Source: Lenisia limosa | Taxonomy: Eukaryota; Protista; Breviatea | Direction: 5' to 3' | NCBI GenBank assembly: GCA_001655205.1 | Contig: LPNZ01008015.1 | Location: forward strand, 1-41,194 | Length of the DNA: 41,194 nt | Part shown: positions 10,310-35,071 of the stretch, in pieces | How the letters are laid out: each line of letters starts with the position of its first letter | How positions within the stretch are numbered: the stretch's first letter is position 1 | The notes under the pieces: model-generated | The model's input: the letters and a program-made list of their open reading frames with translations, nothing else | What the model was told of the DNA's origin: nothing | The model's database searches: none | Translations under genes and position numbers: made by a program

Positions 10310-11927
10310 TTAAAGGTCATCCTCGTCATCAAACTCGAATTCTTCGTCATCCTAAAGCATGAGTTTAGACACCACAAGCGAAACGTTACTGAAGCATACA
10401 TCCTCTTCCTCAGCAGCGGCGGCGGCAGCGGCTTCACGGGCAGCGGCTTCTTCCTACACAAAATCAGCGATCATACATACTATGTGTTATACGGGAAAAC
10501 CAATTTGACTTTCCGCTTACAGCCTGCTTCTTCTTAATCTCCTCCTGCTCGGTGTCATACATCTTCTTCTCGGCGGCGAAGGTGGCACCCCAGGTCTCCT
10601 TAATGAAAGCATCAACCTCAGATTTGTCATCGGCAACGATGATGTTGTCAAAGACGGTACCAGACTTAACCTGCCAGAGATCGAAACCAACACCAGCGAA
10701 TGACTCGTACATGTAGACGTCCTCATGCTCGACAAAGTCGGGGTTGGCAATCATGGGGTGCTCCCACTTGCCCTGGTAGGCAGGGTTGACGATTTGCTTA
10801 GGAGTCCAGGGAGAATACTCAGGATTGGGGACCATAGGGGCTTCCCATTCTCCGTCAAGCTCATCAGACCAGTCCTCAGGAATCTCAGCCTCGGGATCCT
10901 CCACGAACTCAACAGGCCAGTCAGCGGGCTAAATTAAATTATTAATAATCAATGACAAAAGATTCAATAACATAAAAAATATCATAAGGAGCTAACCTTG
11001 ACATCTTCTGGGTCGTCAATCTTTTCACGATCATCCCAGTCAGAGGGGCGAGTGACAGCGGGATCAGGAATCTCACGGGCGAGGAGGAAGTCCCAGTTTT
11101 CGTAAAGAGATCCAGTGGCAACCTCGTTCTCGTCGATCTCAACAACGTAGGTAGAGTCAGGCTTCACAATGAAGGTGTAAACGTGAGTGATTTCGTCGGT
11201 CTCAACCTTGATTTCCTTCTTGGAAAGGAGGTTCTCTTCACCATGACGGAAGATAAGATGGGTCTTCTTGTTGGAAGGACCACAGATATCAGGGCCAAAC
11301 ATGACGCTAAAAAATGTTAGAGGGTTTCAAAAGGAAAGCTTGAAAAAAACGTTTAACTCCCAAATACTTGTAGACGGTCTCTCCATCGAATTTATCAGCA
11401 TCAAAGCCAGCAGGGAGAAGCTTGATGTATCCTCCACCACAATCGATTTTCTGGTCATTCTTGACAGTAAAAGAAAGGACGAGGTCCTTTCCCTTGTTGC
11501 TGAACTCTTCGAAAGAAGCGGTCATTCCATAGAACTTGGCATCCTCAGAGGTCTTGATTCCTGGAAGTCAATTAGACAAAAAATTATCTTATTGGTGGTC
11601 ACAAAACCCATATTGGTCCCAAAAGAGTGAACATTTCCTTTCAATCAGTGACATCATAATTTGGGGAAAGAAAAAAAAGATGTTTCATAACCATTCCGTA
11701 TCCCACCAGTGTTGATCTTCTTGTCACCATAGTGCTTGCCGACAGCAGAAGTGAAATGTCCAAAATCTTCCTTAGCAGAAGACTGAACCCAACGGGATTC
11801 CCAGTCTCCATCTATACAGGTTAATATTAAACAATCTAAGAAGAACCTCACCAAAAGTTTCCTTCAGATAAACCTTCGCTGAGGCGGCCGCCACAAGGGC
11901 CAGGACGAAATATACCCAAACCTTCAT
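10310..11927 (-). CDS. CALR: Calreticulin, multi-exon
   Basis: Signal peptide MKVWVYFVLALVAAASA; KIDCGGGYIKLLP, MFGPDICGPSNKKTHLIF, P-domain repeats (IPDPAVTRPSDWDD, DWSDELDGEWEAP), FDLWQVKSGTVFDNII; acidic tail ending EDDL*. Confidence 0.97.
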
Positions 11928-15000: not shown

Positions 15001-17172
15001 TTGCCATCTTCCTCAACTGCACCTTACGCATACTCTTGGACACCGTCAAACAGTACTGCACCCACCCTGCGGTCCTTAGCCACCAGTAACCTTGCATCCT
15101 CCATAGTTTATGACAAGCTACCATTATCGTGGCCAGCGATCATGAATGGACCCGTCACCCTTGGTTCAGCCGACTTCAAGATTTTCGACCAATGCTTGTG
15201 TGATGATCTTCGTTTCGGTCAAGATTCCCTTTCTTCAGCCCCCGCTGATGATTTCGAGGTGCCCGTGGCCGAGTCAACACATTCTGGTGTAAATAACAGT
15301 AATGTTGAGTCAGATGTCGATATTTGGTCAATGTACAGCAGCGATGACAGTGCTGCTGTTTCAGATGATGACGTGTTCACTGACCAAACTCCGATGAACA
15401 CCCCGGACCCAGGTGTCAATGTCATGCTTGCTGGGGAACAAAAACAAGAAGTTCCTCCCAGGAAAAAGATTGATACTCGACCCATTTCGCTTGATTCTCT
15501 CGGTTTGATGTCACATAACGAATTAGTCAGTCACTTGGAAGGCCTTGAAGATGACAGTCAAACCATTCGAACTTTTGGATCTCGTTCCTTGCTTGCTGAC
15601 ATTACTGCGCACCTTCCAGTCGCCAACATGACCCTCCCGTCAACTGAGCCTCTTTGGTTGTGCAGTCAGTGTTCCATGCCTACATGTGGCCAGGCATCAG
15701 CCTTTTCACCGCCTCGTCATCCCGACCTTTGGGACCTTTTGGGACCAGTGTGCCTTCATTGTGCTCTCTGCGAAGTTTCGGAAGTGAAAGCTCATTTTCA
15801 GAAGCCCACTAACATTCTGCCACCTTCAGGTCCACCACTTTCCACTACTCCCGATGCCAAATCCTCTGTACAAATCGAAATCGAACCCGTTGTTTCTCCA
15901 CCGTCATCCCCGGTGACCATTTCCCCATCTCCTTTCAAAAGTGAATCCTCTCCCGTCGAAGTTGAATCACCTCAAGAATGCAAGAAGGAACCACCTTGCC
16001 AAGAAGTCAAAGAACCAGCTCAACAACAAGAGCAAAAGGAGTCCCCACCCCCAAGTCCTGTTTTCTCTCCGATTGTCCAAGAAGTTGTTAAGTCGGTCGC
16101 ATTCCAGACCCCTTCATCTCCTTCTGCTAACTCACATTTAGTCCCAAAACGACCTCAGACCTCTGAAGTTTATCAACCTTCTAAAAAAAATATTCCCCAG
16201 CAAACTTCGGATAATTTAGTTCCTCCCAGCCCCCCCGTATTTCAGACTCAGCCCTATCCGTATTTCTACCCCCCATCAGCTCCACAACACCCTATGATGT
16301 ACACGGCTACAGATCCCAATCTTGTTACCCTACTGCAATCTCTCACTGCCCAAGTACAGGCCCTTTCCATCCCACGTCCCCCTGTTATGACGGCTCCGTC
16401 CCTGATGAGTCAAAAAGTGTCATCAGAAGTCACAACTCAAACTGGTACCATTTCATCTTCGGAGAAAATTCTCAGCTCATCCCCTTTCAAAGCCAAAGTA
16501 TCACATCCTCTTCACCTCACCCACGCAACTACAACTACAACTTCTGTTGCTTGTTCGCCTATTCACGATACCATGTCCCCCCCTCACTCCTCCATCCACG
16601 ACCATCCTGTCCCCTACCTCCCCCGACCCGAGTCTCCCGTCAGCTCCTTGGATGAACCGATAACAAGCCGTCAGAACGAAGTCCCGGTCCGGCCTCAGCC
16701 GACGACCTCCGTCCAAGAGCTCCAAGCTGCCCTCACCATCAACGATGAAGAAGAAGCCGTTCGTCAGTATATGATAAACGAAGGACTTTTCTGGACCCGT
16801 GGTGCACGAAGAAAGCTGCGTCATCAAGATCGCTTGGAACGAGCGATGCGAATTGCAGTCGACAACCAAGCTAGAGTTGATATTGGAAAACGGGACACTG
16901 CTCGTGCTCGTCTCAACCGAATTTCCGCCGCTGAAGCCAGGCAAGTTGCCTCCGCTTCCGAAAACCTCCACTCCAAACTCAGTTCCGATATGAAGCATTC
17001 TGACGACTCTTTGAAGACGACAATGAGCCGCTGGGACATAGCAGAGCGAAATGCCCGGGCTAATTTGGTCCGTCAGGAACAAAGATGGAGAACGGCAGAG
17101 AAGAAAGCCTTGGGGCATTTCAACAAAGAGGTTTCAAGTGATGAGCGATTGGCCAACAAGTTATTGGCTTAG
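15001..17172 (+). CDS. Orphan uninterrupted ORF: Ser/Pro-rich, Cys/His cluster, basic helical C-terminus
   Basis: 723-codon open frame (open from 14917; first ATG 15142; possible acceptor catttag at 14935); CSQCSMPTC..H..CLHCALC cluster; no introns, unlike nearly all neighbours. Confidence 0.7.
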   Translation: MPSSSTAPYAYSWTPSNSTAPTLRSLATSNLASSIVYDKLPLSWPAIMNGPVTLGSADFKIFDQCLCDDLRFGQDSLSSAPADDFEVPVAESTHSGVNNSNVESDVDIWSMYSSDDSAAVSDDDVFTDQTPMNTPDPGVNVMLAGEQKQEVPPRKKIDTRPISLDSLGLMSHNELVSHLEGLEDDSQTIRTFGSRSLLADITAHLPVANMTLPSTEPLWLCSQCSMPTCGQASAFSPPRHPDLWDLLGPVCLHCALCEVSEVKAHFQKPTNILPPSGPPLSTTPDAKSSVQIEIEPVVSPPSSPVTISPSPFKSESSPVEVESPQECKKEPPCQEVKEPAQQQEQKESPPPSPVFSPIVQEVVKSVAFQTPSSPSANSHLVPKRPQTSEVYQPSKKNIPQQTSDNLVPPSPPVFQTQPYPYFYPPSAPQHPMMYTATDPNLVTLLQSLTAQVQALSIPRPPVMTAPSLMSQKVSSEVTTQTGTISSSEKILSSSPFKAKVSHPLHLTHATTTTTSVACSPIHDTMSPPHSSIHDHPVPYLPRPESPVSSLDEPITSRQNEVPVRPQPTTSVQELQAALTINDEEEAVRQYMINEGLFWTRGARRKLRHQDRLERAMRIAVDNQARVDIGKRDTARARLNRISAAEARQVASASENLHSKLSSDMKHSDDSLKTTMSRWDIAERNARANLVRQEQRWRTAEKKALGHFNKEVSSDERLANKLLA

Positions 17173-20280: not shown

Positions 20281-23200
20281 TTAGACAGTGTTGTCATCAA
20301 GAAGTGGCTCATGGACAGACTGGAAAGTTAACAAAAGTGACAGCGTAGGAATGTCACACCCAACCAACTCTAGCATGCTGATGCATCCTTCTCCATCCTA
20401 CTGAATTAATCGAGGGAAAATCTGGACAAAGTTGGACAAAGTGTCGAGATAAAGTGAAGTCAAGCAACTTATCACCCTCTTACTTCCGCGACGAATATGA
20501 TATCCAATTTCAAGTCGAATTTTCTGGAACATTAATTTTGTGACAATGGTGAGAGATTATCGTTCTTCCTTACATCATCAGGAGCATCGCCAAAGTTGAA
20601 CCAGTAAGCTCTCCACGCGGCAAACGGTACCACACAGGCAACAAGGCAAACTAAATTTCACAAATTAATATGAAACTGACAAAAGAAATTCCTACCGCTC
20701 AAATAGAGCCAAAAGACAGGCTCAGTCAGAAGTCTAAAGAAGACATGGTACATACCAACCATCGGGAGAAGATTGAAGAAGGTTGTGAAGACTAGATGTT
20801 CATTCCAACATTTGGCACCTACCGAAGAACGCAAGGGTGCAAAGAACAACTGCTCCAAGGTTGATGATTGAAATAGAAGTAAAGGAAAGAAGGATTACAA
20901 CCATGTGAACAAATATTACACCGCTATAAGCGGCCAAAGAGAATAGTGACTGGCTGTCAGAGGATCCATCATGCTAAGATATAAGACTCGTTTTCTACAG
21001 GAACTCACTGAGTCAATGAATTCAGCTGCCATGATATTGGAGCTGAAGAAATAAACAATGAGCGACTGAAAGAGTGCTGAAAAAATCCATCCTCCAAAGG
21101 TGCGCCTTGTAAACATCAACCCTAGAGATTATAAAATGAAGTGTATCGAACCTTTCCTGCAACTATGATAGAGTGTAGGGATATTGAAAGCAGTATCAGG
21201 CAGAACATCGGTGTCAAACACAAAAGCAAGAACTGGAAGACTGAAAAGTAAGCATCAAAAGAAGACTCATACCTTGTGAAGAACATGTTATACGTGGTCA
21301 GAGAGTAGGAGTCGAAAAGACTTGAACCAGAGAAGGTAGACTCATAACTGAAGTACAGCTGGATCAAACATATCAACATTGATTTGTAGAACCTAAAAAT
21401 AAGATAACCATGAAAAACATACGAGAAATGGGCAACAAAAGATGATCGTCTGTAACTTTGTCTTCCATGAATCATTGTCAATCTTCCCAGAGCTTTGAAC
21501 CATCCAACACTGTAATCAGCAGCCCGGGAAGCTTGTAAACCCTCATATCCTTCAATTCCAACACCCACAGCTGCCTCCTGGATCATTGACACATCGTTGC
21601 CTATGGATTAGATTGAGACACTGACAACAAACCTCCATCACCAATGGCCAGCGTAACTCTTCCTGTATTCTTGACAAGGCGAACCACCAAAGCTTTTTCT
21701 TGTGGGGTTACACGGCAGCAGATAACCGTACTAAACATGATTAAAAAAACCACTCCTACTCGGCAACAAGACCAAGTTCAAGAAAATCTTCTGAGAAGTA
21801 CTCGAGCACAGTTCCCAAAGAAGTGCCACTGATGAGGAGGGTTTGGCTCTGTTGCAATTATGAGACCAATTAACACCTACAGTGCCATCAATACAGCAAC
21901 GCTGACTTAGATCTTTGAGATCGTTGAGAGAGTTTTGAATCTCATCTGAAAGTTACACATCACGATTTTCTCACCTTTTTCAGAACCGACAATTGTGAGA
22001 AGCTTTCCTGATGTGTGGTAAAGGTTGCAAGAAGTAGCAATCTCAACAGCAGTAGTTAGCTACGGATTAAGGAAGGGGCGCCTACAACACAAACCTTGTC
22101 ACCAGTGAGCATCCAGACTTTTATTCCCGCATCCCTCATAAGCTGGATAGTTTCGGGAACGCTTTCCTACAAGGTGAAGAAATGTTGATAAAATGACATG
22201 AAGAGAGTGCTACCATCAATAATAACTTACCTGTAACTTATCTTCAATTGCGGTGATACCAAGAAATTCAAAATCTTTTTCGACACTGACAAATACCTCT
22301 TCCAAGCTCTCATCACGACCAGTTATCATGATTTCAGCCTAAATAGGTCAATTATTCAACACACATACCTTATGGTAATCTTCAAGATACTTATCCTTTT
22401 CCTCTTTTGAGAGCTCTCTGAAAATGAACAGGATGATCAGTGAAACAAACCTCTTGGCAATAATTAAAGTTCTTAAACCTTGAGCAGCGAAAGATTCGAG
22501 GTCAGCAACCGAGGACTGGAGAAGACTTTCACTGTTTTTAGTGGAAAGCCTGAACAAGTAAGTAAGCCCATCAGGGTTGTCGTAATATATAGATTACGAT
22601 ATACTATTACAATTACTATATTATGTAATATATACGTAAATCATTATACATATGATACACTAATATGATATATCGATAGATACAATATGATATTACTATA
22701 TGATATATGTGGGTCCTCAAAGCTCCGGACATCATTCAAAATTCCCGGACACATCAAAACTNNNNNNNNNNNNNNNNNNNNNNNNNNNNNNNNNNNNNNN
22801 NNNNNNNNNNNNNNNNNNNNNNNNNNNNNNNNNNNNNNNNNNNNNNNNNNNNNNNNNNNNNNNNNNNNNNNNNNNNNNNNNNNNNNNNNNNNNNNNNNNN
22901 NNNNNNNNNNNNNNNNNNNNNNNNNNNNNNNNNNNNNNNNNNNNNNNNNNNNNNNNNNNNNNNNNNNNNNNNNNNNNNNNNNNNNNNNNNNNNNNNNNNN
23001 NNNNNNNNNNNNNNNNNNNNNNNNTTTGTACCCCTCGGAGTAATTGATTCCGGGTTCCCATTTGCTTTGGCTATGTAATGGTGAATTTTGAGGGGAAAAT
23101 GCTAAAAATAGCACTGTCTACAGGGGTAAACTTTCCCGGATAGTTGCCATTTATTCCTTGAATGTGGCCTTTTATAACGGTTTTTGCTTGTTTTTGACCG

Positions 23201-26320: not shown

Positions 26321-27055
26321 ATGGATTACCGAAGGAGTAGGCGCTCTCCTGATCCGTACTCAGGTGGAAGAAGAAGAGGTTATAGAGGCCGTGATGAGTA
26401 CGTCGATGACAGGGAGTATAGAAGTCGTTCAAGAGACTATGAACGCTCTTCCTACCGCTCTTCAAGGTACAATGACTACGACATTATGCATGAAATCCAA
26501 AATGACCCACGCCTTCGTCAAGCCATGGAAATTGGAGTCCGTGCAGGAATGATGCAGTCACAATCACATCATTCGTATCCTCCTCGTTCTTACCCTCCAA
26601 GAAGACGCCCAGCATTTGATGAATTTAAGATTGAAGGATGTCTCGGTGTTGGAACTGATGGAAAACGATTCATGGAGGGAGACTTCAACTGCGTTAAATG
26701 TGACACACATAACTACAGCAGACGCAACACTTGTTTCAAGTGTGATGAGCCAAGGCCAAGTAGGGATACTGCCGAAGGTGCCAGAGCCCATAACAGCTTT
26801 TCAAAGCCTGATTCGCAAATGAGGGACAAGTTTAATTATGTACCCAGAGAAGGTGACTGGAATTGCTCTAAATGTGATGGTCAAAATTACAACAAAAGGT
26901 TTGCATTATGGTATAATTATTGTATTTCCCTCTTCCTTTGTTCATGATTTAGAACTGATTGCTACCGTTGCCATGAGCCTAAGCCATATCGTGGCCAAGA
27001 GCAAGTGGAAGATGAAGTTGTTAGGTCTGTGTCCGAAAGTTGTGATGAATGGTGA
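26321..27055 (+). CDS. RanBP2-type zinc-finger protein (two fingers) with Arg/Ser/Tyr-rich N-terminus, likely RNA-binding
   Basis: EGDFNCVKCDTHNYSRRNTCFKC and REGDWNCSKCDGQNYNKR/TDCYRC; one intron at ~26899-26952. Confidence 0.9.
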
Positions 27056-27212: not shown

Positions 27213-29069
27213 TTAGAGAGTAGGGTACTTCATCTGGTCCTTGGTGAAACCAGGCATTGGGAATTGAGTGGCAAACTCCTCAACCTCCTTCTTAAGAGTG
27301 GCAAGCTTCTCGTTTCCATGCATGCCCTTCTTGAAGTCAACAAGTTTCTTGCCATGGCTGGCCTAAAAGTTTTAGAAGAAAATAAGAAAATAAAGAATAT
27401 GGGATAACAAACCTGGATTTCAAGAGCAATCTTAACGGCCTTGTCAAGGAAAGAAGCAATTTTGGTAAAGTCATCATTCTTCATGCCGCGAGAAGTGAGA
27501 GCGGGGGCACCAAGGCGGAGACCACCAGGGGAGAGAGCAGAGCGGTCACCCTGGACAGTGTTCTTGTTGACAGTGATAGAGCACTCCTCGAGGAGAGTTT
27601 CCATCTTGGAGCCAGTGAGTCCCTAAAAAGTAAGGGGAAAAAAGGTTTGATGAGACAAGGAAGACCACAAAAACAACCACTGACAAGGGGGTTGAGATTC
27701 CAGAGGAGGAGATGGTTGTCGGTACCGTTAGAGACAAGAGTGTAGTCGAGGGCCATAAGAGCCTCAGCAAGCTTCTTGGAGTTGGACACGACTTGCTTGG
27801 CGTAGTCAACGAACTCAGGACTGGCAACTTGCTTCAGACAAGTGGCGACAGCGGCAATCTACACAAAATTAGCTTTGCTAGAGAAAGGCCAAGTTCAAAC
27901 CTGGTGTTCATGGGGACCACCCTGGTTGGAAGGGAAGACGGCAAAATTGATAGCCTCTTCGTATTGCTTCTTGAAGAAGACAAGTCCAGAGCGGGGGCCA
28001 CGGAGAGTCTTGTGGGTGGTGGAGGTTACAACATCGCAGAACTTGAAGGGGTCGTTCACGATCTGGGCAGCAACAAGACCAGAAATGTGGGCCATATCAC
28101 AAAGAAGAATAGCCTTGTTGGCGTCAGCAATAGCGCGGAGACGAGCGTAGTCCCATTCACGAGGGTAAGCGGAGCCACCACAAATGATGAGCTTGGGATG
28201 GTAAAGAGCAGCATCGCGAGAGAGCTTCTCATAATCAATGTCGCCAGCATCCTAGATGATTAGTAAATATCAAATGAAGAAAACTCTTACATTGAGCTGG
28301 TAGGGGAAAGACTCGAAATAGATAGAAGAGCTGGAAATCTTCTTGGAGGCAGTTTGGTATCCGTGAGTCAGACTTGAAAATAAGAAAAGGGGGAGGCATG
28401 GTCTTACTGTCCACCAGAAGGAAGGTCGAGTCCCATAATACGGTCATGGGGGTTGAGAAGTCCAGTGAAGGCGTTGAAGTTAGCAGTAGAGCCTTGGAGG
28501 TAAAATGGTAAAACCATAAAAACCCTATCAGAAAATATGAAAAACACTTACCAGAGTAAGATTGGACATTGACACCCCACTCGGATTCGTTGAGGTGGAA
28601 AGCGGCGAGAGCACGCTTCTGGCACATTGTCTCAATCTGACAGATTAGACCACAAAAGGGGCCAAATTACAAACCTGATCAATGAATTCGTTACCACCAT
28701 AATATCTAAACACAATTAAAGAAAGGAAGAAGGGGGAGGTATCATGAGCAACAATAATCGAAAAAAGAAGGTGACTAATATCACAAGCAAACCTCTTTCC
28801 GGGAAGGCCCTCAGCGTATTTGTTGGTAAGAGGGGAGCCAAGGCACTCAAGAGCAGCTTGGGAAGTAAAGTTCTAGAAAAAAATTAGTAGTGTTCATTGG
28901 CCTTCTTAAAAGCAGCATTAAAAGTAACAGTTAAAGTGGTCAAAGCATTCTATTTGCAAAGGCAAACCTCAGAGGCAATTAGCTCAAGTCCGCGCCATTG
29001 GCGGTTCTTTTCCTTCTCAATGAGGTCAAAGAGCTCGGGGTCAGACTGGGCAAGAGATTGGTTGAGCAT
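27213..29069 (-). CDS. SHMT: Serine hydroxymethyltransferase, no N-terminal targeting extension (cytosolic type)
   Basis: [52 protein letters not shown] (PLP lysine), QGGPH, GTDNHL; upstream intron appears to be in the 5' UTR. Confidence 0.97.
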
Positions 29070-29454
29070 AGTAGGTGCCTAAAAAAAGAAATCAGTCACA
29101 TCCCAATAAAAGAAGCTCTAACTCACTACCTACCTGGGTTTAGAAATCCGCAAAAGGTAGAAAGATTCAAAATTTTCACAAAACAGATACGATTTAGAAC
29201 ATTCTAGAATTATTAAAACGATTACTTTTGATTACTTAGGCCACCATTTGTGTGTCACCAACCGACCCCTCCTCCCCAACTCCTCACTCCTTTTTTGACC
29301 TCCTTCTATATATAATAAAACCCAACAACAAAAATAAAACGGAAAGACTTAGAAAGACAAGACTTCTACCTGAGTACTTTGCCAAAACTCAACCACCCGC
29401 TTGCTAAATCTCAAAGCTACCTTCCCATCGAACCTCGAACGAACTTTTTTCAAA

Positions 29455-32400
29455 ATGACGGGTAGGCGGGTGGAGTATTACTTTTATTTCTTGAAAACAT
29501 AAGAGTAACCATTCAGTTGAATCAAACATTCTTCTTGACATTGTGGATTTGCATGTCTCTGTCTGTGGAAAACCTGTACTAAAGGGAGTCAACCTTAGAA
29601 TTTTAAAGGTAAATTTTTTGTGATGGTGATAGCTTTAGGGGGAAGTCCATGTTCTTTTAGGCCCCAATGGCTCCGGAAAATCCACTTTACTTGCCTCTCT
29701 TATGGGGTTCTCAAATTACACCATCACTCAAGGCAAAATCTTCTTTAATGGACAGGTAAAACAAAGTTTATTGAGTAATATGGCGTAGGATATGACTTAT
29801 AAATCTGTTGATGAGCGTGCTAGAGCTGGTATGGGTGTCATGTTCCAAAGACCCCCCACTGTACCTGGAGTTCAGCTTAAAACTCTCCTCCAGTCAGTGC
29901 TTGAAATTTCTGATTCTCTAGAGCCTCGTCACCTTCAGTCAATCCCTCTGGCCATGTGTCAACCACCAGAATGTCTGAATTCTTGGAGCGTGATGTCAAT
30001 GTTGGATTTTCAGGAGGAGAAACTAAGCGTTCCGAACTTCTTCAAGTTTGGGAGATAATGTTATTTTCACTGTTCAGGTCATGTGCCAAAAGCCTGATCT
30101 TGTTCTTCTTGATGAACCTGAAAGTGGAGTTGATCTTGAAAATATGGTTGTTCTTGGACATGGTTGCAAAACTCTCCTCTCAAGAGTAGGTTGCCTTTCT
30201 TTCTTCACTCCTCAGGATACTAACAAAAATCGTGGTGGTTTGATCATTACTCATACTGGTCATATTTTGGACTATGTCGACAGTGATGTTGGACACATCT
30301 TGATCAATGGAATTATTAGATGCAGTAATGCAAATCCAGTCCAACTTCTCGAACAGGTTAGGGAGAAAAAAAGTCCTTATTTTTCAGATTAGATCGCGGG
30401 GTTACTTCGAATGTCGCAAATGCTCTGTAGCTGAGGCGTGTGATGATCATATTATTGAATCTCCTTGCCCACAACTTCCTTCTCCACCTGTTCAGGAACC
30501 TCGTCACCTTGAAGCTTTTGTTGGTTTTTATTATTTTCACTGTTTCAGGCTCCCTCTGAAACTCCTTCATCTCTTGGTGCACTCACTAAGACCAAATCTG
30601 GTGCAATGATGATTGATCTCGATGATGACCTTAACGCCATGGAGGAGGAGGATCCCCTTTCTGATGACGTTATTTCACTGCCAAAACAATCTCAAGCCAC
30701 TCAAGTTGGTCTTGTACATTTGGTCTTTATGATCCTTCAGTCTTCGCTTTCTACTGCCCTTCTCGAGCGTAAGGCCTTGGAAGACGATGGAATTAAAACA
30801 TCAGGAAGATACCTTCAGGTTTGAACGGTAACACCCTTTAAGCTCTGGGACAGAAAAAGAGACCTTGGTAGGTATACCATTGTCTTAAAGCAGGTTATTG
30901 TTTCCAAACCTGGCTTGGTTGAAGGACAAAAAGAACCGTAATCGAGCATAACTTGCATGGTTTAGAAATAGTATAATAAAAATAATTATTAGAACAACAA
31001 TTACGATTATCGTACTGACTGAGATCTTAATCAAATTCTGCTAACAAGCAGTAAAAAGATGACATTACTGTAAGGTTATGTTCGGATATCCGTGTCAATT
31101 TCCTGGAACTACACCCTGATTTAAAACACATTGTCAAACCTCTGTTCCTCTCTATTTACATGGACCAAGTTTCAATTTTCAGGTTGATCAGCGGGTTGAT
31201 GTAGTTAAGTCGACTGTTGAGGGGCTTGAAATCATACCTCTCAAGGAAGCACTTGCTTTGTACCCTGAAATCAGTAAGATCTTTTTATAATATCGCAGTA
31301 ATAATCTTCAGGAGAAAAATACTACTGGAAAACAGTTTCTCGTGACAAGGATGAGTACACCAAGGCAGTATCCGATCATGAACTGGCAAATGTTTGTTTT
31401 TTACTTATTATTTACTCATTGTTAGGACTGCAAAGGATACGTTATCATCTGTCGTAAAGGTGTCAAACTTGAGAACCCTGTGGATGCAGGTAGTGCATTA
31501 TTTTATCCAAAGGATTATTCCTGACTTTTTATAGGTGTTCTTATGGAAGGATCTCAGCATCAGTTTGTACATAATATATTGATTGCCGAACCGGAAAGCG
31601 TTCTTCACGTTGCTTCTTCTTGCACTGGATGCTCTGGTGGCTCAGCGGTTGTTACACATTATGGTGTTTCTGAATTCTTTGTTGAAGAAGTGAGCAAATA
31701 CCTTTTTCAGCACGTCATTATTCACTGTTGCAGAATGCAACTATTTCATTCAGCATGGTGCACACCTTTTGCCCCAAATACACAATCTATCCCAGGTTTG
31801 GAAAACTCTTTTGAAGCTATTGTAGTTTTGATTATGGTATCAAATTGTATTTTTCAATATTCCTTTATTTGTTTTCGTGTAGTTTCTCTCAGCATAGTAA
31901 TGTTCACAGATCTGCTGCGATTGTCCAAAAGGGCGGTACTTATCTTTCGAACTACATTTGTGTACATCCTCTTGTGAAGATTCAGGTATTTTATAACTGA
32001 TATTCTGAATAAATTTGTCAGCCACTTTTTTTATACTCTAGATGTATCCTGTTGCAAAACTGGTTGGCGAAGGCGCGACCGCTAAGTTCTCTTCTGTTAT
32101 TCTTGCTGCTGAAGGGTAAGAACCATGGTATATTTTTGACCAATCTTTCATTTCTTGATTAAATTATTAGTTCTCTTTTCGATACTGGCTCTCGTGTGAT
32201 TTTGGACTCGCCTAACACAACCTGTGAAATGATTTCTCGTATTATTTCTACTGGTAAGACTGATGTCCTAAAGTCATATTCAAAAGTGAATAATCTACCA
32301 GGAGCAATATCATCATTGATATTATTATGTGATATCAAAATTTACTCATCGTTTCAGGTGGTAAGGTAATTGCTCGTGCCCATATTCAAGGAAATGAGGA

Positions 32401-32785
32401 CCAAACTAAAGGTCATATTGAGTGTCAGGTTTGTTAGTTTTCTTTTTGAAAGAAATTTCACCTTAAAGGGGCTCGTTCTTGGGCGTGGTATTATCCACGC
32501 AATTCCTGAAATTGAGGGCTGTGTTGAAGGTGAGTAAGGTACAGTTAGGTGTTCGTTCAGTTCTTAGCTAATATGATTTTTCTAGGCTCTGAATTGTCGC
32601 ATGAAGCAGCAGTGGGAAAAATTGCCAAGGAAAAACTGGAGTATCTGATGTCAAGAGGCCTTTCAGAAGGTGAAGCTATCTCTATGGTTGTTCGTGGATT
32701 CCTTGAAATTCGCATTAAGGGCATTCCTCCTTCCCTTCAAAACACCATCGATCGTGTCATTGATGAAGCTGCCAAGGGTTTTTAA
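29455..32785 (+). CDS. sufCB: SufC-SufB fusion (SufCB/SmsCB), archaeal-type minimal SUF Fe-S assembly protein, multi-exon
   Basis: ABC ATPase part: [43 protein letters not shown]; in-frame linker; SufB part: [53 protein letters not shown]; ends EAAKGF* at 32785. Confidence 0.92.
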
Positions 32786-32938
32786 GAGGATATCAATAGT
32801 TTTCAATGGTATTTGTTTCTGAATGTATGATGTTTTAACGATGGAAGAAACACTAAATGTACAAGAATACTAGAACTAGAAAAAAACAATATACCATTAG
32901 ATATCAATTGGATCATTGAGAGGGTCTAAAGGTTAGAA

Positions 32939-35071
32939 CTATTTGGGACAACAAAAACACAAACTATGTCCATCAAGGCAATTGACAAGGGCGTTTTTGT
33001 AGTTGTCAGTCTTGATAACATTTTTCAAATTTGAAGTGAAAATCTCTTCATGGTAGAAAGGCTCATGTTCGTGGAATCCAGACTTCTTGCAAGTCTTCAA
33101 AAACTGTCGTCCAGTATATGTAAGTCGGAAATAGCCTCGTTCCAGAGTTCCTCCCATATGCGCATCAACAACACTAATCGCTTCTCTCACATGAGCCTGA
33201 AATATTAACATATAAGTGCCCAAAAATAGTTATAGAAGATTGACCTACCTCATAGTAGGCCTGGTTGTGTTGATCAATTGATGAAAGACGACATCCATGC
33301 TTGGGATGTGTGTGAATGTAACCCATTTCAATGAGCTTGTGCTTTTCCTAGACATGAAAGGAAAAAAACAAACCATAAATTCGATTCTTGATACAGTCAT
33401 ATCAGGGTCTTCACCACAGCTGTCGGGAGTATTATTGGATTGCTTGGGGACATAGACACAAGAGATACGATAGTATTCCTCGCCATTTGAATCCTAGATG
33501 AGTTAAAGAGCGTAGATAAATGCTGTGAGAGTAAATATGATAACTCACAATCTCAGTCGAAGCCAGGAGGAAACCCATTGCTTCCAGATTTTTGGCAGTA
33601 AAATCATCTGTTAAGCTCCTGAAAAGTAAAAAAAAAAAAATGCAAAAGAATATCACTCACGTGAACTGGTTCAGGAGGGAATCAGAAATGACAACCTTTT
33701 TCAGACCATCCTGGTCAATCTTATCTTCATCCACCTAAATTGTCAACTGAAAGCAAAGAAGACAAGCAAAGAGAAGAGAGCCTCTCACCATGACACCTGC
33801 AATTCTACAAGCAAATTCATGGTCTTTTTTCCGATATTGACCAATAGGAAATCCAGCAAAACCAAGTCGACATGTCGTAATTAAATGAGGGGGATCAGTG
33901 AGAAGGCCACACCATCTGAATGTGAGAACAACAGAAGTAAACATACTTGCAGTAACTATCAGGGAGATGAGGCGGAATGGGCCCAATTGGGGCAGCATGA
34001 ATTTGGAAGTGTTCAATTTCTTGCTTTGTGGGGGGACCAGCCTATAAAATGAGGCTTATTTTTCTCAAAAAAGAAAAAATAGTATGAAAACATAATACAT
34101 AGTGTATGGTATCCCAGCATACAGGCGCTGCTTCTGCGAGAGCTGGCGGTCCATCATCATCATCTTCATCATCTTCATCTTCATCTTCATCTTCACTTAC
34201 TTGTTTCACAATAGGCTTCTTCTGTTCTTTTTTCTTCTTCAATTCCTCCTCCTTCTTAACTTGCTCTCTCTGCTCCCGTTCTTTTTTTGCCTTTTCATAC
34301 AGACTTACCTGCTTGAGGTCCTTTGTAGCCTTATCAGTCACTTCCTCCCAGATTTGTGTATTCCTATGTGAAGTCTTCTGAGAGTGAAGTTTATTTTCTT
34401 CTTCCATTTTCTTGATTTCTTGCTCTCTGAACTGGCGTTTGGCTTCATCTCTCTCCTTTTTCAGCTTTTCGTTCTCAGATTTCTGCTTCTCCTTCTTTTC
34501 ATCATTCAATTTCTTAACTCTTTCATTTCTCGCCTTGAGAGCCTCAAGTCTTGCCTTCTCTTCGATCCGCTTGGCACTCTCTTCTGCTTTGACAGCTGCC
34601 TCATCTTTCACCACCTTCGCTTCACCAACTCTCCTGTTGACAAGATCAGCTTTCGAATATTTGCCCTTCTTGTTCGACTTCTTTGTTTCTTTTTTCACTT
34701 CCTTAGGAGGAGGAGGCTGCTCAACACGAGTGGTAGCACATTCTTCAATCTTACCGTTGACTTCAGCCATGTTGTCTTTCAAAGGCTACAAAGTAAAGAG
34801 GGAAGTTAGCAAACCTGAACCGCATCTTTAAGGCGAGTTATAGCTTCCTTGGTGAGTTCCTTCCGATTGTTTAAGTTACTGAGTACTTCTGGTGAATCTT
34901 TGTATCCTGGGGGGGGGGGGGGNNNNNNNNNNNNNNNNNNNNNNNNNNNNNNNNNNNNNNNNNNNNNNNNNNNNNNNNNNNNNNNNNNNNNNNNNNNNAA
35001 CACACGAGAGTTGAAAACAACAAAACAAACAAATCCCAGGCAGTCGCTTCTGTAGTACCGCACTCCAACAT
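32939..35071 (-). CDS. AMSH/STAMBP-like JAMM (MPN+) deubiquitinase; 5' end unresolved across N gap
   Basis: HEFACRIAGVM, GYIHTHPKHGCRLSSIDQH (HxHx7SxxD), YFRLTYTGRQFLKTCKKSGFHEH; long K/E-rich coiled coil and acidic tract upstream. Confidence 0.8.
34923..34998. other. Assembly gap (N run)
   Basis: Run of N next to a poly-G tract. Confidence 0.99.

Follow-up and report, generated by a model that had tools for sequence, protein, structure and literature searches.

An intron-rich SmsCB (SufCB) fusion gene of archaeal type in the nuclear genome of the breviate Lenisia limosa

Few examples show as clearly as the SmsCB protein, formerly called SufCB, how a gene from archaea can reshape a core pathway of eukaryotes. 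That it is a fusion of SmsC and SmsB, that it originated from Methanomicrobiales and that it is present in Blastocystis, Pygsuia, Stygiella and the BaSk metamonads has been established (PMC11316075, PMC6857552). The Blastocystis protein is cytosolic (PMC6857552). The breviate Pygsuia biforma has a cytosolic copy (EukProt EP00033 P000710; described in Stairs et al. 2014, as cited in PMC6857552) and a second, organelle-targeted copy. According to a January 2026 preprint (Yi et al. 2026, bioRxiv 10.64898/2026.01.29.702055), Pygsuia has no ISC system, whereas L. limosa, another breviate, is listed with a cytosolic copy only (cSMSCB) together with organellar ISCU and ISCS. In the same preprint, FB10N2 is the one breviate studied for which no cytosolic SMSCB transcript is recorded. 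Here we describe an SmsCB fusion gene in a window of 41,194 nt of L. limosa DNA (the whole of contig LPNZ01008015.1, assembly GCA_001655205.1). It occupies positions 29455-32785 of the forward strand, from an ATG at 29455 to a TAA at 32783-32785, and is very probably the cytosolic SmsCB of this breviate, descended from a Methanomicrobiales-type operon that later gained about 20 introns. The cSMSCB transcript of Yi et al. (2026) is probably derived from the same gene, but it is transcript-based and comes without a gene structure in the accessible text.

The gene is a typical representative of a family that has recently been well charted, and its lineage is already known to carry the fusion. An earlier note on this DNA had suggested that the fusion would be new if the source lineage was not a known carrier. 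The lineage is, however, a known carrier. The L. limosa protein is sister to that of Pygsuia (see below), and the preprint reports cytosolic SMSCB in nearly all breviates, L. limosa among them. What is new is the genomic gene model and the load of 20 introns, and this novelty is modest.

The gene model was built by reading 29200-33100 and translating its three frames, in which SufC-like and SufB-like peptides on the forward strand are interrupted by short GT...AG segments. The resulting scripted splice model has 21 exons and 20 introns, all of them GT-AG, and a coding sequence (CDS) of 2076 nt, which is translated into 691 amino acids (aa) without internal stops. Introns 1-10 measure 55, 30, 33, 29, 32, 30, 31, 29, 36 and 364 nt and introns 11-20 measure 38, 34, 45, 44, 114, 56, 55, 104, 40 and 56 nt. 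The earlier note had described the SufC part as continuing through phase-0 introns into the SufB part. This is correct for the four introns that bridge the end of SufC, the linker and the start of SufB (after aa 231, 275, 327 and 353), but not for the gene as a whole, in which 12 introns are in phase 0, 5 in phase 1 and 3 in phase 2.

The model is corroborated by reads of a single 2016 study, which comprises a DNA-like run (X1), in which every word sampled from the locus occurs, and a polyA metatranscriptomic run (X2). Contigs from the DNA-like run are colinear with the genome across 28900-33300. The polyA run provides one contig of 2259 nt that spans 29330-32843 and matches the splice model exactly. 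All of the joints and deletions printed in its alignment coincide with model introns and have GT..AG ends, and the removal of three other introns is seen from the sum of lengths. The 5' untranslated region (UTR; 125 nt), the CDS (2076 nt) and the 3' UTR (58 nt) add up to 2259 nt, which means that all 20 introns have been removed and that no retained intron is possible. There is no stop after the CRKC motif at the end of the SufC half, and the reading frame stays open through the linker that joins it to the SufB half. SmsC-SmsB is a true fusion that is expressed as one spliced mRNA.

What if the locus were a prokaryotic contaminant, or two adjacent genes joined by the assembler? One thing that speaks for this, and so against a single fused transcript, is that the transcript was seen as a de Bruijn contig rather than as one long read or molecule, and an RNA contig alone is no proof of a single transcript. 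However, the open frame is matched by the same fused architecture in at least ten other eukaryotic proteins, which makes the idea of two separate genes untenable. Contamination is excluded by the combination of 20 spliceosomal GT-AG introns, their removal in polyA RNA and eukaryotic neighbours on both flanks (genes for serine hydroxymethyltransferase, SHMT, and a JAB/MPN-domain protein adjoin the fusion, and calreticulin and P4-ATPase sequences lie further away on the contig). The chance that either form of this explanation is right is negligible. Thus, the case that the earlier note had built on introns alone is strengthened, and so is its description of a SufC-SufB fusion without an intervening stop, for which there is one open reading frame (ORF), one RNA contig and colinearity with the fusions of Pygsuia, Stygiella, Cantina, Blastocystis and the BaSk metamonads. 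For a breviate, the locus proves at the genome level that the fusion gene resides in the nucleus.

The SmsC half has all the elements of an ABC-type ATPase, which are the Walker A motif, the signature, the Walker B/D-loop and the H-loop, and ITHTGH is present. Its D-loop, DEPESGVD, is identical to that of Methanomicrobiales SmsC, whereas bacterial SufC has DE(S/T)DSGLD. Cys220 is kept in Methanomicrobiales SmsC and in most eukaryotic fusions but is replaced by Val or Lys in bacterial SufC. The archaeal SmsC-type loop and the terminal GYxECxxC that had been noticed previously are therefore both real, the latter as GYFECRKC with a CxxC. Beyond it comes the linker of 104 aa, which is acidic (21 D/E vs 7 K/R), rich in Ser, Pro and Leu and poorly conserved among fusions. 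It is probably a tether only. The SmsB half that follows is short and does not have the SufB N-terminal domain. It carries GHIECQGL and SHEAAVG, as had been claimed, and the N-terminus quoted at the time is present as well. Cys604, in the first of these motifs, is the counterpart of E. coli SufB C405 and T. kodakarensis SmsB C357, and His631 and Glu632, in the second, are the counterparts of T. kodakarensis SmsB H385 and E386, with the equivalence of this triad assigned via the motifs named in PMC12442378. These motifs are invariant in 10 fusions (alignment A1, SufB halves).

Searches with fragments of the protein lead to the same families. Among single exons, Pfam recognizes ABC_tran in exon 3 (1.8e-9) and SUFBD_core in exon 21 (3.4e-11) and, weakly, in exon 14; none of the remaining single exons, mostly of 20-50 aa, had a Pfam match. 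A 93-aa stretch from the C half matches SufC proteins in PDB. The last exon matches a Methanosarcina SufBD-like protein best (4dn7; 1.3e-18, 69 bits), with lower scores for E. coli SufB (about 30 bits) and M. jannaschii SmsB (MJ0034, 316 aa; 29.5 bits). Exons 7 and 8 on their own did not lead to M. jannaschii SmsC in PDB, and its residues were mapped via Methanomicrobiales SmsC instead.

Relatives of the whole protein were collected with a HMMER scan of 1.84 billion representatives, for which the 93-aa stretch of the C half was the query, and with two word searches seeded by its matches. The L. limosa protein is colinear from end to end with the named SufCB/SmsCB fusions (blastp, E = 0), a match that chance cannot account for. 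By blastp it is 52% identical over the whole length to the 680-aa cytosolic copy of Pygsuia biforma, 47.5% to the 698-aa organellar copy, 47% to the Stygiella incarcerata fusion, 45% to those of Cantina marsupialis and two skoliomonads, and 42% to that of Barthelona sp. PCE. In one MAFFT alignment, the identities are 46% for Barthelona sp. PAP020 and 45% for Blastocystis sp. Blastoise. In another, which was made earlier, the motifs quoted in the earlier note are all conserved. Blastocystis, Stygiella, Cantina and the BaSk metamonads have the same fusion, 42-48% identical to the L. limosa protein and part of one eukaryotic clade. The cytosolic copy of Pygsuia is alike in its C-to-B order, presequence-less N-terminus, Walker A/B motifs and Cys motifs, but its linker sequence is unrelated to that of L. 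limosa.

A full-length copy of the L. limosa protein was not found in a collection of 15 billion proteins, in which it is represented only by an ORF fragment of 103 aa, a prokaryote-style ORF call from ENA assembly ERZ3820729. Two proteins were considered as possible paralogues. P0002 was rejected, since it derives from another sample (SRR22387828), and P0092, from a separate ENA contig, appears to be an ORF called by read-through across a frameshift. Further eukaryote-like SmsCB fusions occur on environmental or Logan contigs, namely L086 (SRR22387828), L082 (ERR14657300), P0055 and P0057. In at least one of them, L086, the SufC and SufB parts are divided over several called ORFs, possibly by introns. 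The P0146 protein, whose gene (L082) has the length of an intronless CDS, clusters with Cantina in the tree described below, as do P0055 and P0057. The carriers of SmsCB exceed those named so far.

Where did the gene come from? A pattern scan of prokaryotes, with one genome per species and the SufB-half alignment A1, confirmed 590 loci. The best 80 of these are all from Methanomicrobiales (Methanoregula, Methanoculleus, Methanospirillum, Methanolinea and Methanofollis). In 78 of these 80, smsC directly precedes smsB on the same strand, and identity to the L. limosa protein is 47-56% for the C half and 46-52% for the B half. The Methanomicrobiales operon (e.g., Methanoregula and Methanoculleus; loci L002-L081) thus has the gene order of the L. 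limosa fusion, an identical D-loop, the Cys of G-x-I-R-C and the C-terminal Cys motif. It differs in that SmsC and SmsB are encoded as separate proteins, without introns and without a linker between them. The resemblance to the bacterial and plastid SUF system (SufBC2D) is much more distant, with 30 bits for the last exon against 69 for the Methanosarcina protein. Its ATPase and scaffold folds are homologous, but the D-loop differs, SufC does not have the Cys-rich tail, and neither the SufD partner nor the SufB N-terminal domain is seen in the L. limosa protein. Identity with bacterial or plastid SUF was rejected on the grounds that the nearest prokaryotic matches (the best 80 of 590) are all from Methanomicrobiales and that the Cys tail is present. 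The same matches bear out the view of the earlier note that the gene is of archaeal type.

The origin from Methanomicrobiales is also apparent from a maximum-likelihood (ML) tree. It was computed from a concatenated alignment of 47 rows and 600 columns under LG+C20+F+G4 with posterior mean site frequencies (PMSF) and a careful search, and support is given here as ultrafast bootstrap (UFBoot)/SH-aLRT. At most 6 archaeal loci per genus label were kept, so that 44 of 78 were omitted, as were P0256 (Blastocystis), P0257 (Barthelona PAP020) and P0258 (GEM-RC1). The only outgroups were two distant prokaryotic fusions (P0148 and P0149). All eukaryotic fusions in the tree form one clade (95/99) among Methanomicrobiales, the backbone of which is weakly resolved. 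This rules out a placement with plastid or proteobacterial SUF. L. limosa SmsCB groups with the cytosolic copy of Pygsuia (98/89), and both Pygsuia copies join it in a breviate clade (97/96). Published trees agree with this tree (PMC11316075, PMC6857552), and so does the tree in the 2026 preprint (bioRxiv 10.64898/2026.01.29.702055). One aspect that seemed at odds with the literature is that L. limosa SmsCB groups with the cytosolic copy of Pygsuia to the exclusion of the organellar one, as a published scenario invokes a duplication. However, an approximately unbiased (AU) test does not reject a clade of the cytosolic and organellar Pygsuia copies (p = 0.265). The topology is therefore compatible with a duplication after Lenisia diverged, and the supposed conflict was dropped. 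The best explanation for all this is that a Methanomicrobiales-type smsC-smsB operon was fused into one ORF, transferred laterally into eukaryotes and inherited by L. limosa from the breviate ancestor.

Is the product cytosolic or organellar? An alternative to a cytosolic protein is that it is imported into the mitochondrion-related organelle, like the mSufCB of Pygsuia. This would not strictly require a visible signal, as some organellar proteins of anaerobic protists are without a recognisable presequence. However, several observations do not fit. Over the 125 nt of 5' UTR, the mRNA contig follows the genome without interruption, offers no ATG and, 27 codons before the start, has an in-frame stop. 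The first conserved ABC strand is reached after only about 6 residues, and the start coincides with those of E. coli SufC and archaeal SmsC. Three of the first 13 residues are acidic (positions 4, 10 and 13). In the MAFFT alignment the N-terminus aligns with that of the Pygsuia cytosolic copy, whereas an N-terminal extension of about 40 aa is carried only by the 698-aa organellar copy. Finally, the 2026 preprint calls the Lenisia copy cytosolic and places ISCU and ISCS in the organelle (bioRxiv 10.64898/2026.01.29.702055). Import into the organelle is therefore very unlikely, and the N-terminal sequence points to a cytosolic copy. This is what the earlier note had proposed from the apparent lack of a presequence, and the upstream region and the alignment now add to that prediction.

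What the protein may do can be considered in the light of archaeal homologues. SmsC2B2 of M. jannaschii (PDB 9h78, 9h7y) consists of an ABC ATPase and a SufBD-core scaffold, as in L. limosa, but its subunits are separate. One [4Fe-4S] cluster is bound to the flexible C-terminal region of SmsC via C218, C239 and C242, and binding of ATP and of the cluster is mutually exclusive (PMC12192291). With sulfide and under anoxia, the M. jannaschii SMS system rescues E. coli that has neither ISC nor SUF (PMC12192291). In T. kodakarensis, C357, H385 and E386 of SmsB have been put forward as possible ligands (PMC12442378). By analogy, two fusion polypeptides would dimerise via the beta-helix of their SmsB halves to form (CB)2, the equivalent of SmsC2B2. 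Fe(II) and, probably, free sulfide would then be built into a [4Fe-4S] cluster on the Cys-rich tail of SmsC (C220, C240 and C243), with a possible contribution from the Cys604/His631/Glu632 site of SmsB. The ABC site would bind and hydrolyse ATP in alternation with cluster binding, leading to release of the cluster to cytosolic clients or the cytosolic iron-sulfur cluster assembly (CIA) pathway. How the protein oligomerises, the chemistry of its cluster, its source of sulfur, its place in the cytosol and its clients are all things that we infer.

One part of the scheme for which the alignment can be consulted is the cluster-binding tail. In a transitive alignment via Methanomicrobiales SmsC, C240 and C243 of L. 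limosa are 12 and 15 residues after a conserved Pro, compared with 11 and 14 in MJ0035, and so the CxxC is offset by no more than one residue from C239-x-x-C242 of M. jannaschii. Other observations weigh against a simple transfer of the mechanism. The column of M. jannaschii C218 holds Ile in L. limosa and Methanomicrobiales, with a Cys (C220) 7 residues later, and the third cluster ligand in the L. limosa SmsC half is uncertain. In addition, the publications disagree, with the cluster on SmsC in one (PMC12192291) and SmsB residues usable in the other (PMC12442378). The number and position of Cys residues vary among SmsC proteins (PMC12192291). The Blastocystis sp. Blastoise protein (P0256, L085) does not have the CxxC, with G-F-S-A-F-A-N-N in place of the G-Y-x-x-C-x-x-C of the others. 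This copy must work differently if clusters are assembled on the SmsC tail.

The load of 20 introns in a CDS of 2.1 kb is very high. Exact protein-to-genome mapping (L083, L084 and L085) gives intron counts of 0 for the same gene in Barthelona sp. PCE, 1 (31 nt) in Skoliomonas litria and 9 in Blastocystis sp. Blastoise. A single position and phase is shared, that of L. limosa intron 18 and the Blastocystis sp. Blastoise intron at L085:3662-3773. Both interrupt, in phase 1, the codon for the first Gly of a conserved Gly-Gly (...S-x-G-G... motif). Could this intron be inherited in common rather than gained in parallel? It would mean that the fused gene already bore introns when it moved between eukaryotes, and would be direct evidence that genomic DNA passed from one eukaryote to another or that SmsCB arose in eukaryotes much earlier. 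Breviate genomes could then serve to order the transfers. However, the coincidence can be explained by chance. With uniform insertion, 20 introns against 9 and about 2000 aligned sites, at least one shared position is expected with a chance of about 0.09 (1-(1-20/2007)^9), and the chance is higher at a G|GT proto-splice site. Common inheritance of intron 18 is unlikely. With one shared position that is compatible with chance, most or all of the introns were gained after the gene was acquired. Intron 13 of L. limosa and the Blastocystis intron at L085:2890-2990 lie in the same codon but in different phases.

The locus yields an exact gene model for a full-length protein that is missing from the public collections searched. 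It can serve as a reference when the L. limosa genome is annotated and when intron positions are used to test how the gene spread among eukaryotes, and it leaves the current picture unchanged. The coordinates are collected in Table 1.

Table 1. Parts of the SmsCB gene and other features of the window, with their positions in the 41,194-nt stretch
Feature	Position	Strand	Basis or remark
5' UTR	29330-29454	+	to limit of RNA contig
SmsCB exons 1-7	29455-29461, 29517-29608, 29639-29755, 29789-29892, 29922-30045, 30078-30185, 30216-30356	+	
SmsCB exons 8-14	30388-30519, 30549-30704, 30741-30818, 31183-31273, 31312-31391, 31426-31489, 31535-31689	+	
SmsCB exons 15-21	31734-31795, 31910-31985, 32042-32115, 32171-32253, 32358-32428, 32469-32529, 32586-32785	+	
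SmsC/SufC ABC-ATPase half, aa 1-243, ends in Cys-rich C-terminal region	29455-30423	+	Pfam ABC_tran, PDB SufC matches
Walker A GPNGSGKST, aa 41-49	29660-29686	+	sequence
Walker B / D-loop DEPESGVD, aa 160-167	30111-30134	+	sequence, alignment
Cys220 in GIIRC	30321-30323	+	alignment
CxxC C240-R-K-C243, within GYFECRKC	30412-30423	+	alignment
Linker, 104 aa (aa 244-347), spans introns 8 and 9	30424-30800	+	alignment
SmsB/SufB scaffold half, aa 348-691 (344 aa)	30801-32782	+	Pfam SUFBD_core, PDB 4dn7
Intron 10, only long intron (364 nt)	30819-31182	+	gene model, RNA contig
Intron 18 (104 nt), phase 1 in Gly582	32254-32357	+	position and phase equal one Blastocystis SufCB intron
GHIECQ (then GL in next exon), Cys604	32411-32428	+	invariant in alignment A1
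SHEAAVG, His631 and Glu632	32597-32617	+	invariant in alignment A1
3' UTR	32786-32843	+	to limit of RNA contig
SHMT	28235-29069 or 28235-29132	-	just upstream of SmsCB; spliced RNA contig, depth 343
JAB/MPN-domain gene	32939-33400	-	just downstream of SmsCB
Calreticulin	10464-10904	-	exon-sized ORF match
P4-ATPase C-terminal domain	21122-21592	-	exon-sized ORF match
RanBP-type zinc finger	26321-26947	+	exon-sized ORF match

Two further stretches of the window deserve mention. Within intron 10, the contigs of the DNA-like run break at 30907-30946, leaving loose ends to the left and right, and depths there sum to twice the usual value (78 vs 38-40). This suggests a segment of about 40 nt that is repeated elsewhere in the genome, or an allelic variant. 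The segment occurs once in the window. A transposon was searched for in this intron and rejected, as there are no clear and convincing terminal repeats. The other stretch, 15001-17172, contains an open frame of 723 aa on the forward strand without a Pfam match. It is the only GC-rich part of the window (GC 0.49-0.51), has a strong negative GC skew and may be a low-complexity or repeat-rich gene.

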